In this document: positions 26,023 to 32,844 of the stretch, piece after piece
Numbering within the stretch: position 1 is the stretch's first letter
Layout: each line of letters starts with the position of its first letter
Assembly (NCBI RefSeq): GCF_963853765.1
Contig: NC_088861.1
Span: 30,194,001-30,258,000 of the forward strand
Length of the DNA: 64,000 nucleotides
From: Magallana gigas
Taxonomy: Eukaryota
Direction: 5' to 3'
Position numbers and translations under genes: made by a program
Notes under the pieces: model-generated
The model's input: only the letters and a program-made list of their open reading frames with translations
Databases searched by the model: none
Told to the model about the DNA's origin: nothing

Positions 26023-29000
26023 ATGAGTTCCTTAGTGCCCACATTCCAACGATTGCCCTCAGGAATTTTGTCCCTCAGTGACAGTGCTGCTGCGAGAGCC
26101 GTGAAAACGGAACACAGGGAACGGAACCGAGCTGAATCCGAGAGTGTCATCCGGATAAAGACCCAGGCAGAGCGATCCGTAAACGCCTTGGGGGGAGATG
26201 TTAAGAATGTAAAGCATCTGCTCGGACAACATACAATCCAGTTTGGACAGTTTCGGTAATTGGCATTCTATTGTGACAATATTAAGTCAATTAAAGTGCA
26301 TGTACCGGTAATACCGAACAATAATTAATTTCATTAAGATAGAAATAAATGTTAGTTTCTGTTCTTTAACTTTTTGTGATAATTTCATAAACAATCAATC
26401 ATCATCTTGATTTAGTAAAAAATGCCTTTGAATGATTTATTCAAATTAGAAGAATTTTTTTTTATGGTTTTTATTGAGAAAATCTTGTTTTATTTCAGAG
26501 GAATGACATTCAAATGGCTGCTTGAAAATGCTCCGGGGTGGGTTGCGTTTTTGATTGCCAGGGATGAAACTTCCGGAGAGACCCAGGGTGTTGGCAATAG
26601 ATGGCTTAACAAGATGGCCCTCCGAAGATATGTCTATCTGTTTGAAGAGAGCAAGGAATTAGTGAGGATGAAAAGAGAAGAAAAACAGAGAAGGACACCT
26701 GGTGCGTTCGAATATTAAAATAAGATATGTTTAACATGTTTAATCCTTAGGACTGAAATACATGTATTAAGTTTTTGATACTTCATATTGAAGCTAATTA
26801 TTAATTGCATTTTAGGGAATCAGAAGCCAAGTTCAGAGACCAGAACCCTTGATGTTCATGTTGATGACTCTGAACTGATAGCATGCTTAGAGGAAGTGGA
26901 AGGCAAAGCTGGCAAAGGTGAGGACTACATGTCAATTACATGTCTTACTCTTTCAGAAAATCTGCTAAAAAATGAGAGGCTATTTATTTTGTCTGTCAAC
27001 ATTTAAAAAGCAATTTGAATTTTTCAAACAATAGTGTATTAAAATATAGGGTTTGTTATGTTTGTTATAATAGTTTTGATATTAAAATTTATCTTCGAAT
27101 AACAGAATCTTCCTACATACTGGTCTTCATCAGTAAGTATATGAGGGTAATTTGTCTGTTATATATTATCAAGTGGGCTTGTTGTACTGTGTGGTTATGG
27201 CGAGTAAATATAGAGTGGCTATATGTGGTGTCTGTCTCCTTTTACATTTGTTTTGCACTTGTGAAATCAATCATAATCACAGTGTAATCCTTCATACATG
27301 TAACATCAAAATGTAATCATTTCTGTATATAGTGTATCATTACTTTATGGAAATGTATCAGATTTTCATTTTATTTTTATTCTATTCTTCTAATTACAAC
27401 GAGAGAAAATGTGTATTCATCTAAGCATTGTTTTTGTTTCTTATACGAAATCGTGCTTATAATATGGCTATTATTGTAAATTGTTTAAAATTCTTACATG
27501 TTGAATATTAAGTCATGTTGTAAATTACATAACAACAGGAATCCCAAAGCCTACGCCAAATCTTGCATCGGCTGTTAGGAGGAAATCATCTACATCTACT
27601 TCTACATCTGGTAATATTTTAATACCAAAATACATATCCTAATAAGAAACAAAAATATTTACTTTCCTGTCTGCAGCAACATTTTATAACACTTGAATAT
27701 CAAATATGGATTAACATTTTATTTTAGAAGATTCCGGTTCCTCCAGGCCGACTAGTAGTACTTCAGCTGCCATGGTTGGAAGAAATCAGCAGCAAGAGTC
27801 AAGTTCATCCACAGGTTAGCCAAATTACTTTAATGTGGTAAAAATACAATTAAAAAAATATCTAAAACTTTGAATGTGTATTTTACACTTTAATTTCTAA
27901 AAGTTTCTTATCCGAAGATATGACATGTGAACATTGGTATGAATGTAATTGCATGTTAAATGATTTTGTTCCAGCACCGGAGTTGGATAGCCTAGCACTT
28001 CCTTCTGGCTGGAAAAAGACGCTTCCTGAAGTTGACCATCAGTGGATATCGGAGACCTTCTTTCATGCTGGGAAGCGAGGTCCTGAATTTGATTTCAGCC
28101 GTGTGTCAAAGCTATGGTACGATCCACCCCAGCCAAGTCTGTCCCGAGCTGTCTTGAACAAGCCGGACCGATACTTTGGACATCGTTTCTTTCTTTGGAT
28201 GCCACGCCACTTGTTCCATACGCAGTTTCACTGCCCCCATAGTGGTTGTAACGGAACGTTGACAAATGCAGGCGTCCATCAGAAAACCAGGCGTGTTGTG
28301 GATGTAGATTCTGTCTACAATATAGCAGCTGAATATCTTAGCTGTTCCAACTGCCATAAGAAGGGTATGCCTTTCAATTTTTTTAAATCAGGAATTTAAA
28401 CCTTTTTTGACATACTGTCAATGAAATAAAGAATATGATAGGGTATGAACATGTTTTTGTGATATCAGTAAATATTTTAAATTTTTTTTTTTTCACAGTT
28501 ATTAGTTGGAGTGAGGGAGTTCTTAACCAACTGGACAATGCAACAAGGTCCCGCTTTCCTTGCATCCTTACCTCGAAGTATGCCTGCGATTTGAAGATTG
28601 TACGCCTTCTGAGACAGAGAGGACTTGGAAACAGCAGCAGCGCAGTGATGAAACAGGTAAGGGAACAACATGGTGAGTCTTATCTAAATAATTTACAATT
28701 GTATCTATCTCATTGCAGGGACTTTAAGACATCGGCAGAGAGGGGATTCTTTGCTCCGATTCAGTTTAGTGAGCCTCCTCCAGCTGCCGCTGTACCAAGA
28801 CACCGCTGGTTCATGAAGGTCTACCAGATAGATGTTCTGAACCGCGTTGATTACATCAAAGCCCACATGACGTCACAGTTTGGGACCGTCCTCAAGATGG
28901 ACTCAACAAAGAAAATCACCAACAAGCTTGCCGGTAGGTTTTTCGATAAGAAAATATATGTTAATGAGTTATATATTGTTGGAGGTAAAGTGAAGTATTT

Positions 29001-32000: not shown

Positions 32001-32844
32001 GATTTGTCTTTTTCAAACACAAATATAAGTAATGAACAGCAAGTTTAAGGGTTCATTGGGATATGAACTTGGTTAATTGGCTGGTACATGATCAAATCTC
32101 CTGGGAAATCCTTGGCTTCACATGATTGGATCATGTGACCAACCAGGTTCATATACTGATGAAATTCTTAACTTTTCTGTTTATTTCATGTACATTTAAA
32201 TAGGTATCTAAATTGCAGATAGTTTCTTTTTTATTAATAATACTAGAATTCAATTCTAATTTTTCAGGTTCAATGAGAAGAGTAAGGCTGAGGAGAAGAA
32301 AATCTTAATGCAGGGTCTTGCACTTCCTACACCAAAAATGACAGTAGCCAAGGCACCAGAAGCCTTGCCCAAGCCAACATCTTTGCCAGCAGGAAGCACA
32401 GACCCCTTCTCTTTTCATGATCCACCCTCTACAATTGGTATGGCCAAACTCAAGAGCAGACCAAAGAAGACTCCAAAAGCACCAATACCAGCTGTGGCAC
32501 CTGTTCTTCCTTGTCCGACACCTTCTTGCGATCCTGTCATGAGCTTCCAATTGGTCACAACTACAGAAGGCACTGCTTTGTTGATTCCAAATATTCCACA
32601 CTCTACAAAGCAGTACCAGAAACGAAAACAAGAGCTTGAGGAGCAAGGGCGACCAAAAAGGAAGTATGTCAGGACCTCCACGGTAATCAGGTGTAGCAAG
32701 TGTGGTGAGGATATGAAGCCGCCAGACCATTCACAGTATATGGGCTATCGGTATTGTGCTCGCAAAGACAACATACCATTTCAAGAGTGGAGGGATAATC
32801 TGCAGAAGGCTGGAGTAGCCAGGAAAAAGAAGACTCAGCAGTAA
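26023..32844 (+). CDS. Dada-type DDE transposase, 15 exons, ~1322 aa
   Basis: Exons 26023-26255, 26499-26701, 26816-26917, 27539-27610, 27728-27814, 27975-28364, 28499-28933, 29187-29424, 29518-30053, 30176-30388, 30475-30792, 30917-30981, 31223-31470, 31606-31857 and 32268-32844 total 3969 nt. All are GT-AG, every phase matches, and there is no internal stop. Motifs: FGQFRGMTFKWLLEN, CPHSGC...CSNC, LKMDSTKK (D), LYVDRDCC (D), LDIWHFMRR (DxxH), RGSTSLESFH (E), GELIGIEYLYSQTG, and C-terminal CSKC...H...YC. Confidence 0.85.
32052..32163. repeat. Small palindromic element in transposase intron 14 (second copy at 35071-35182)
   Basis: Imperfect inverted repeat TTCATTGGGATATGAACTTGGTT / AACCAGGTTCATATACTGATGAA. 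Confidence 0.5.

Follow-up and report, generated by a model that had tools for sequence, protein, structure and literature searches.

Dada elements are, to our knowledge, the only DNA transposons that home strictly into multicopy small-RNA genes. In the 564-Mb genome assembly of the oyster Magallana gigas, we analysed an AT-rich stretch of 64,000 nucleotides (C9:30194001-30258000, hereafter the window), which very probably holds an intact gene for the transposase of a Dada-superfamily DNA transposon; the element is young and targets nucleotides 8-13 of tRNA-Lys genes. As defined by Kojima and Jurka in 2013 (PMC3706591), a Dada transposase has an Asp-Asp-Glu (DDE) triad, with a DxxH motif past the second D, and two fingers, CCCC in the N-terminal and CCHC in the C-terminal part, with the published patterns C-x4-C-x34-C-x2-C and C-x2-C-x9-H-x8-C, respectively. 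All of the elements but those of Perkinsus contain introns (Dada-U6_DR encodes 1402 amino acids in 11 exons), and they produce 6-7 bp target duplications in small-RNA genes and have no terminal inverted repeats (PMC3706591). The families Dada-tK and Dada-tY use the target TAGCTC at tRNA nucleotides 8-13 (Kojima 2022, PMC8869645); Dada-tK is known from three families of ray-finned fish only, and no transcript of it was found (PMC8869645). The published relations of the superfamily are distant links to IS256, MuDR, hAT, P and Kolobok.

We then compared the window with these descriptions. The locus combines a DDE triad and DxxH, both fingers, sequence likeness to Dada proteins, introns and a lack of terminal inverted repeats, and its family shows a 6-bp target duplication in a small-RNA gene. 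The initial annotation had called the intron-rich structure unusual for a cut-and-paste transposase; it is not, since introns together with Cys4 and CCHC fingers are defining Dada features (PMC3706591). Likeness to Dada was judged by motif strings, collinear blocks and the Pfam domain DUF6729. In the Dataset S1 alignment (PMC3706591), KMDSTKK occurs 11 times, YVDRDCC 8 times and DIWH 9 times, and the FKWLLEN of Dada-U6_CGi is identical to that of the window. Furthermore, the window matches the Dataset S1 blocks ..RCARGSTSLE-S..FHLHLNR-FIPGT.. and ..YTGELIG.V..EYLY.. across exon junctions.

The fish family Dada-tK shares with the window element its superfamily, target gene, site (TAGCTC at nucleotides 8-13, with a 6-bp duplication) and protein layout, but the window host is an invertebrate and the flanks of the window family often read T(A/G)GCGC. 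Among the relatives compared, the nearest belongs to this genome as well, a family inserted in U6 with 73% amino acid identity in exon 9, and full-length library representatives are at most 63% identical. Within this comparison of genome copies and library representatives, there is a hint that tRNA-Lys targeting here may have an origin separate from that of fish Dada-tK. Dada-U6, represented by Dada-U6_CGi of Crassostrea gigas and by a copy at 19.00 Mb on C4 (C4:19000001-19010000), is 38-73% identical to the window protein over exons 6-11 and 13-15. The C4 copy abuts a U6 gene truncated past position 70 (..GCGCAA), and the GCGCAA at this junction, read on the opposite strand, is TTGCGC, the hexamer published for Dada-U6 (PMC3706591). 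Intact U6 and U1 genes neighbour the same copy, and this setting identifies it as a Dada-U6-type element in a small nuclear RNA gene cluster. The window family is distinct from both published oyster sequences, since the family-specific peptides that we tried were absent from Dada-U6_CGi and Dada-1_CGi; by eye, Dada-1_CGi is roughly 55-60% identical to the window in the exon 9 region. No tRNA-Lys Dada from molluscs was found in the literature searched. The kind of element was already published between 2013 and 2022, and the modest addition made here is that a Dada of an invertebrate targets tRNA-Lys.

Gene model and catalytic core

We then investigated the gene model. The initial annotation had described 15 exons separated by 14 GT-AG introns, and a script check of each exon returned the same figures: a reading frame on the + strand from the ATG at 26023 to the TAA at 32842-32844, GT..AG borders in 14 of 14 introns, agreeing phases throughout, and no stop in whole or split codons. 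With acceptors at 29187 and 31223, the coding total is 3969 nt, or 1322 amino acids plus stop. The exons and the support for each are as follows.

26023-26255, + strand: exon 1 (ATG; ends in ..FGQF and a split R), by script, with the sea-urchin homologues P0007 and P0031 collinear over the 1/2 junction
26499-26701, + strand: exon 2 (GMTFKWLLEN..., a motif resembling ExoX-like_C), by script and homologue collinearity
26816-26917, + strand: exon 3 (linker, phase 1-1, 102 nt), by splice consensus and phase
27539-27610, + strand: exon 4 (Ser/Thr-rich linker, 72 nt), by splice consensus and phase
27728-27814, + strand: exon 5 (Ser/Thr-rich linker, 87 nt), by splice consensus and phase
27975-28364, + strand: exon 6 (first half of DUF6729; CCCC finger at 28232-28249 and 28343-28354), by PF20499 (E 1e-38) and homologues
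28499-28933, + strand: exon 7 (second half of DUF6729; D497 in KMDSTKK, 28894-28914), by Pfam (E 5e-36) and homologues
29187-29424, + strand: exon 8 (D565 in YVDRDCC, 29351-29371), by homologue coordinates and D-to-D spacing
29518-30053, + strand: exon 9 (D589xxH592 at 29522-29533, insertion domain, E754 within 30005-30028), by homologues
30176-30388, + strand: exon 10, with junctions 9/10 and 10/11 collinear with homologues and the published Dada alignment (..NRFIPGT.., ..YTGELIG..)
30475-30792, + strand: exon 11 (acidic linker), by paralogue and homologue alignments
30917-30981, + strand: exon 12 (65 nt), by script (splice consensus and phase)
31223-31470, + strand: exon 13 (start of the C-terminal helical domain; alternative acceptor 31184), by paralogue and homologue alignments
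31606-31857, + strand: exon 14 (C-terminal helical domain), by homologue alignments and a confident helical model of the homologous region
32268-32844, + strand: exon 15 (Pro-rich linker, CCHC finger at 32692-32757, TAA at 32842-32844), by script and homologues

In-frame alternative acceptors lie upstream at 29142 and 31184, and their use would give 4053 nt, or 1350 amino acids (28 more). We favour 29187 and 31223 as the probable acceptors, because the homologues are then collinear and the D-to-D spacing is 68 residues, equal to that of Dada-U6_DR; the homologue alignment coordinates resume at 29180, near the start of exon 8. Four stop-free runs of at least 150 codons occur on the + strand, which exceeds chance, as two or more were obtained in 0 of 300 dinucleotide shuffles. 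A length-maximising dynamic programme over GT-AG sites was also tried and rejected, as it returned chains of 16-18 exons and 4.4-4.5 kb that included AT-rich pseudo-exons. Since such a search yields many open chains, openness alone is weak evidence, and the model was thus anchored on homology.

DUF6729 (PF20499) was found to match two exon-sized reading frames, exons 6 and 7, and this genome holds two diverged paralogues in which exons 6-11 and 13-15 are conserved with 38-73% amino acid identity. The full-length predicted homologues of amphioxus, sea urchin and loach at NCBI cross the junctions 1/2, 6/7, 7/8, 9/10, 10/11 and 14/15 without gain or loss of residues, and 11 of the 15 exons are collinear with annotated homologues. 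Exon 9 has 1179 relatives in the representative library, and the N-terminal layout of exon 1 is as in Dada-U6_CGi of Dataset S1. Three Logan proteins from 1-kb contigs, P0054, P0169 and P0170, each of some 300 amino acids and with 90-99% identity, were considered as spliced transcripts and rejected; they cross intron 8 in shifted frames and are thus genomic open reading frame calls rather than RNA evidence.

The residues expected of a DDE transposase were all located in the spliced frame, as the initial annotation had stated for the catalytic D, D, DxxH and E, the N-terminal motif and both fingers. FGQF occupies residues 74-77 and FKWLLEN residues 82-88, with intron 1 between them. The CCCC finger consists of CPHSGC at 319-324 and CSNC at 356-359 (C319, C324, C356 and C359; C-x4-C-x31-C-x2-C), followed by KMDSTKK at 495-501, YVDRDCC at 563-569, DIWH at 589-592 and STSLESFH at 750-757. 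The CCHC finger is formed by CSKC at 1273-1276 with H1285 and C1294 (C-x2-C-x8-H-x8-C).

The fold was assessed with an alignment of the loach homologue P0157 (residues 1-600), 42 other homologues, and window exons 6-10 as five separate rows. P0157:1-600 is 46-64% identical to the window over exons 6-10 and 56-64% over exons 7-9. Its AlphaFold2 model (predicted local distance difference test score, pLDDT, 88; predicted template modelling score 0.83) has D228 on strand 1, D296 just past strand 4, D320xxH323 on strand 5, then an insertion domain of 140 residues, and E484 on the following helix. The window residues D497, D565, D589, H592 and E754 share columns with D228, D296, D320, H323 and E484, and these columns read D/D/D/H/E in 38-43 of the 48 aligned rows. 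The catalytic core would thus adopt an RNase H-like DDE fold, with strand and helix order and the placement of D, D and E as expected from the modelled homologue. In line with the check that had been proposed, the P0157 model is a confident RNase H fold, and the claim of an intact DDE transposase gene is supported, as its D, D, DxxH and E stand in the catalytic columns of the family and on RNase H-fold elements of this model.

When the P0157 model was submitted to Foldseek, the matches with expectation values (E) below 0.001 were ISCth4 transposase chains (IS256 family) only. VIA-align gave Z 13.1 over 272 residues with a root-mean-square deviation of 3.7 for ISCth4, Z 9.5-9.9 for retroviral integrases and Z 9.4 for Hermes. 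The aligned integrase ranges begin at model residue 221 opposite residue 57 of avian sarcoma virus (ASV) and human immunodeficiency virus (HIV) and residue 121 of prototype foamy virus (PFV). Judged from these ranges only, model D228 would stand opposite the first catalytic Asp of the integrases, which is D64 in ASV and HIV and D128 in PFV, if the start of the range is ungapped. The structural matches agree with the published distant link between Dada and IS256. ISCth4 (PDB 6xgx, 6xg8; PMC7780238) corresponds to the Dada protein in the RNase H core, the insertion domain and the preceding helical region, with a D-to-D spacing of 66 residues against 68. It differs in being bacterial and encoded by one open reading frame, with about 11% sequence identity; it has terminal inverted repeats, its duplications are 8 bp long and AT-rich, and its target is not sequence-specific. 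The zinc fingers, long linkers and C-terminal domain of the Dada protein go beyond it. A sequence profile compared with the proteins of solved structure found no match even at E 10.

Outside the core, the N-terminal FG..G.T(F/Y) motif of an amphioxus homologue matched ExoX-like_C (PF20600) with 30.2 bits, and the window exon 2 motif, which intron 1 splits, had no Pfam match. In the model of the conserved C-terminal region (pLDDT 77), a confident helical domain leads into a disordered linker rich in Pro, which ends in a small finger. This model had no fold match (Foldseek none below E 0.45; best VIA Z 5.1), and a three-helix resemblance to Myb/SANT/TEA-like domains was rejected because its Z of 3.5-4.6 is within noise.

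Element ends, target sites and sister copies

The ends of the element were defined by its junctions with sister copies. The window element interrupts a tRNA-Lys(CTT) gene past nucleotide 13, with the following arrangement.

24495-24507, + strand: 5' piece of the tRNA-Lys(CTT) gene, nucleotides 1-13, whose final TGGCTC is the left target hexamer (pattern search)
24508-34733, + strand: Dada element of 10,226 bp; left end TAAGATTCAC..., first right terminus ...GGGTCATGGGCT (junctions with sister copies)
34734-37752, + strand: exact tandem repeat, 3019 bp long, of 31715-34733, a segment with the 3' part of exon 14, the whole of exon 15, the 3' region and the right terminus
37753-37818, + strand: 3' piece of the tRNA-Lys(CTT) gene, opening with the right target hexamer TGGCGC (Rfam, junctions)

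There are no terminal inverted repeats: a comparison of the left end with the reverse-complemented right end was matched or beaten by 288 of 500 shuffles, and a further search showed no terminal pair, at a resolution coarser than short sub-terminal repeats. At the repeat junction, the right terminus (...CATGGGCT) abuts internal position 31715 in exon 14 without an intervening hexamer, and the transposase frame in the first repeat copy is undisturbed by the duplication. An adjacent deletion made by the transposase, or a one-ended strand transfer, would explain this partial repeat.

We next list the copies found elsewhere in the genome, with their identity to the window element.

C3 1.02 Mb: 99% identity; 15 of 15 exons intact, as are the splice sites; intron 7 interrupted by a 1.3-kb insertion
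C3 53.52 Mb, two copies: 99% identity; full, head to tail; 14 exons checked over their whole length, all open
C3 27.44 Mb: 98% identity; stop in exon 13, exon 15 cut short at its end by a deletion, intron 1 interrupted by an 8.6-kb insertion
C1 10.63 Mb: 92% identity; degenerate and 5'-truncated

Exon 14 of the C3 53.52 Mb copies was left unscored, as its alignment is short by just two intron-flank bases. The C3 27.44 Mb copy lies between TAGCTC and TAGCTC in a tRNA-Lys(CTT) gene, a perfect 6-bp duplication. The C3 53.52 Mb pair (minus strand, C3:53518001-53548000) interrupts a tRNA-Lys(TTT) gene in the order TAGCGC, element, TAGCGC, element, TAGCGC, tRNA 3' part, so that the two copies are exactly 6 bp apart. 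The youth claimed for the element by the initial annotation is borne out by the sisters of 98-99% identity, the one perfect duplication and at least three further copies with open exons.

The sequence differences among copies carry a signature of selection. In the exons, the unique differences of the window copy from three young lineages comprise 26 synonymous and 9 non-synonymous changes (expected synonymous fraction 0.25; P 1.5e-9), and divergence from the C3 1.02 Mb copy is 0.3% in exons versus 0.8% in introns. The frame was under purifying selection during the spread of the family, and the synonymous excess and the lower exon divergence thus support both the exon model and recent activity. 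This bears on the possibility that the locus is a domesticated, Dada-derived host gene or an inactive relic that happens to be open. The host-gene-like intron structure would suit such a gene, and a domesticated Dada-U6, dDada of the Cyprinoidei (which include carp), is known; it is likewise Dada-derived and multi-exon, and it is transcribed. However, dDada has mutated D residues, a DxxQ and one orthologous locus, whereas the window protein has intact catalytic residues and belongs to an element whose scattered copies keep their ends. Five or more of these, near-identical and equipped with termini and target hexamers, were located at unrelated sites, and the synonymous excess between copies is the mark of selection on a mobile lineage. 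We consequently hold a host gene or relic to be highly improbable.

The head-to-tail pair bears on the transposition pathway. Transposition could proceed by copy-out/paste-in, with an intermediate that is circular or joined end to end, as in bacterial IS256-family elements, in place of the plain cut-and-paste that the initial annotation assumed, although we regard this as unlikely. ISCth4 forms end-to-end junctions with 6-8 bp spacers and integrates best at 6 bp (PMC7780238), and this pathway would fit the exactly 6 bp of TAGCGC between two full copies, the direct fusion of the window right terminus to 31715, and the variable hexamers around the copies. The last feature also resembles the target-duplication 'replacement' that Kojima observed in other Dada families (Kojima 2022). 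On the other hand, the head-to-tail pair is explained equally well if the right-hand hexamer, once regenerated, took up another insertion. The eukaryotic MULEs, furthermore, are cut-and-paste elements. They too are relatives of IS256 (PMC7780238), so that the fold does not fix the pathway.

How the target is found was considered as well. The initial annotation had suggested recognition of the tRNA A box, directly or through TFIIIC, by the accessory domains. Indeed, the insertion point is the start of the A box, and the N- and C-terminal accessory domains are conserved and without assigned function, which would be compatible with their binding RNA polymerase III (Pol III) factors such as TFIIIC on the A box. 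However, the nearest relative in the same genome, with about 70% amino acid identity where the exons are best conserved, occupies a U6 gene, which argues against TFIIIC targeting, and the Lottia and amphioxus homologues are situated among U6 genes. TFIIIC is not known to be used at animal U6 promoters. In addition, Dada-U1 families target a gene of RNA polymerase II, one copy of the window family lies outside any Rfam-recognised RNA gene, and Kojima (2022, PMC8869645) infers recognition of the primary DNA sequence. Recognition mediated by TFIIIC is thus somewhat disfavoured, and we consider it quite improbable.

The reading that we prefer, an intact transposase gene of a young Dada transposon directed to tRNA-Lys, has several points against it. 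The flanks of the window copy are unequal (TGGCTC and TGGCGC), and neither is the canonical TAGCTC; the copy outside any RNA gene is near-identical (99%) and lies between AGGCGC and TAGCGC, one off-target locus in four. All of the 14 junctions are predictions from DNA, at two of which in-frame alternative acceptors could be used. Exons 3, 4, 5 and 12 rest on splice consensus and phase, without homology support; the first three (102, 72 and 87 nt) are each of phase 1-1, and exon 12 (65 nt) is required for the frame between exons 11 and 13. The fold and residue mapping come from P0157 and not from the joined window protein, for which D-D-E clustering is a prediction. Because of the unequal flanks and the 3-kb tandem duplication, mobility of the window copy is unproven, and its autonomy is plausible but unproven.

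Several further features of the element were observed. Its last 30 nt or so (34704-34733) resemble tRNA-Lys nucleotides 18-53 with deletions (score reached by 2 of 500 shuffles), and at the left end, 24523-24536 has a weaker T-arm-like GTCGTGGTTTGGA (40 of 500 shuffles). Two 43-bp sub-terminal tandem repeats occupy 24525-24610 at the left end, and a CT-rich microsatellite of roughly 650 bp (34059-34700) precedes the right end. An exact 49-bp tandem duplication at 28975-29072 in intron 7 is the site of the 1.3-kb insertion in the C3 1.02 Mb copy. Intron 14 contains a repeat of about 270 bp (31917-32187) with dozens of copies of about 77% identity genome-wide on both strands, which looks like an insertion of the miniature inverted-repeat transposable element type; about 95 bp at 32031-32125 are missing from the C3 53.5 Mb copies. 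AATAAA/ATTAAA signals occur at 33508 and at 33983/33989. Elsewhere in the window, 53094-54118 is a relic of about 1 kb from a different Dada family, about 50% identical in amino acids to exons 10-11 and 14, and no exons beyond these were detectable in it.

Twister-like and tRNA-like motifs past the stop codon

We also analysed the region 3' of the stop codon, where two RNA motifs were detected, each with a second copy in the tandem repeat.

33724-33799 (second copy 36743-36818), + strand: Twister-P1-like motif (Rfam RF03160, 61.7 bits, below the gathering score of 67.2)
33891-33962 (second copy 36910-36981), + strand: tRNA-like gene (Rfam tRNA, 54.2 bits; ARAGORN)

The twister-like motif lies 880 nt past the transposase stop (E 1e-13 in a 401-nt scan), and the tRNA-like gene follows 91 nt beyond it, with intact A- and B-box-like sequences and an aberrant anticodon loop of 6 or 8 nt. 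Exact copies of the tRNA-like sequence occur only within copies of the window element family. The U6-inserted family at C4 19.00 Mb has the same two motifs in the same order past the stop (59.5 and 53.3 bits), at 4065-4158 and 3772-3844 of the stretch C4:19000001-19010000, and the families that carry them differ by 27-60% in protein sequence and in target, tRNA-Lys versus U6. In the two-family alignment, near-identity extends over the core and stems of the ribozyme and over the arms of the tRNA-like gene. Neither the two loops (P2 and anticodon) nor the inter-motif spacer (91 vs 220 nt) can be aligned. One twister P1 pair is compensatory, U-A in the window family and C-G in the U6-inserted family. 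The tRNA-like sequence is 85% conserved in the U6-inserted family, with two structure-preserving changes in the acceptor stem and a different anticodon loop. Neither motif was found at the Lottia and amphioxus Dada loci. Twister-like matches elsewhere in the genome were considered as Dada-linked and rejected, being unrelated to Dada.

The Dada elements of this genome may, as a tentative reading of these sequences, carry a functional RNA module past the stop, in which a self-cleaving twister ribozyme precedes a non-decoding tRNA-like gene; we would put this somewhat below an even chance. If true, such a module would cut or process read-through transcripts. By doing so it could set the extent of the transposase mRNA or restrict its amount, set free a small tRNA-like RNA, or protect the Pol III gene at its flank. 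The literature that we found on twister ribozymes ties them to retrotransposons only, and a functional module would thus, as far as that search shows, tie a twister ribozyme to a DNA transposon.

Proposed mechanism and implications

In the mechanism that we propose, transcription would start inside the element, and splicing of the 14 introns would give a protein of about 1322 amino acids. Its predicted order is an N-terminal FG..G.TFKW motif of the ExoX-like_C type, Ser/Thr-rich linkers, the CCCC finger with a helical region (DUF6729), the putative RNase H-fold core (D497, D565 and D589xxH592), an insertion domain of roughly 150 residues and E754, followed by an acidic linker, the conserved helical C-terminal domain and the CCHC finger. 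This transposase would bind the non-inverted element ends, read the target DNA sequence around the T(A/G)GC(T/G)C hexamer, and cut with a 6-bp stagger.

For annotation, the identification explains the 'uncharacterized protein / DUF6729' models of invertebrates and fish as Dada transposases. Dada elements have been proposed as safe-harbour vectors for gene delivery, and we know of no Dada copy that has been tested for activity so far. The present locus provides a concrete candidate, with a complete frame, several near-identical sisters, defined ends and a 6-bp target in tRNA-Lys. Furthermore, since its close relative in the same genome targets U6, the two families form a natural pair with which to map the part of the protein that reads the target.

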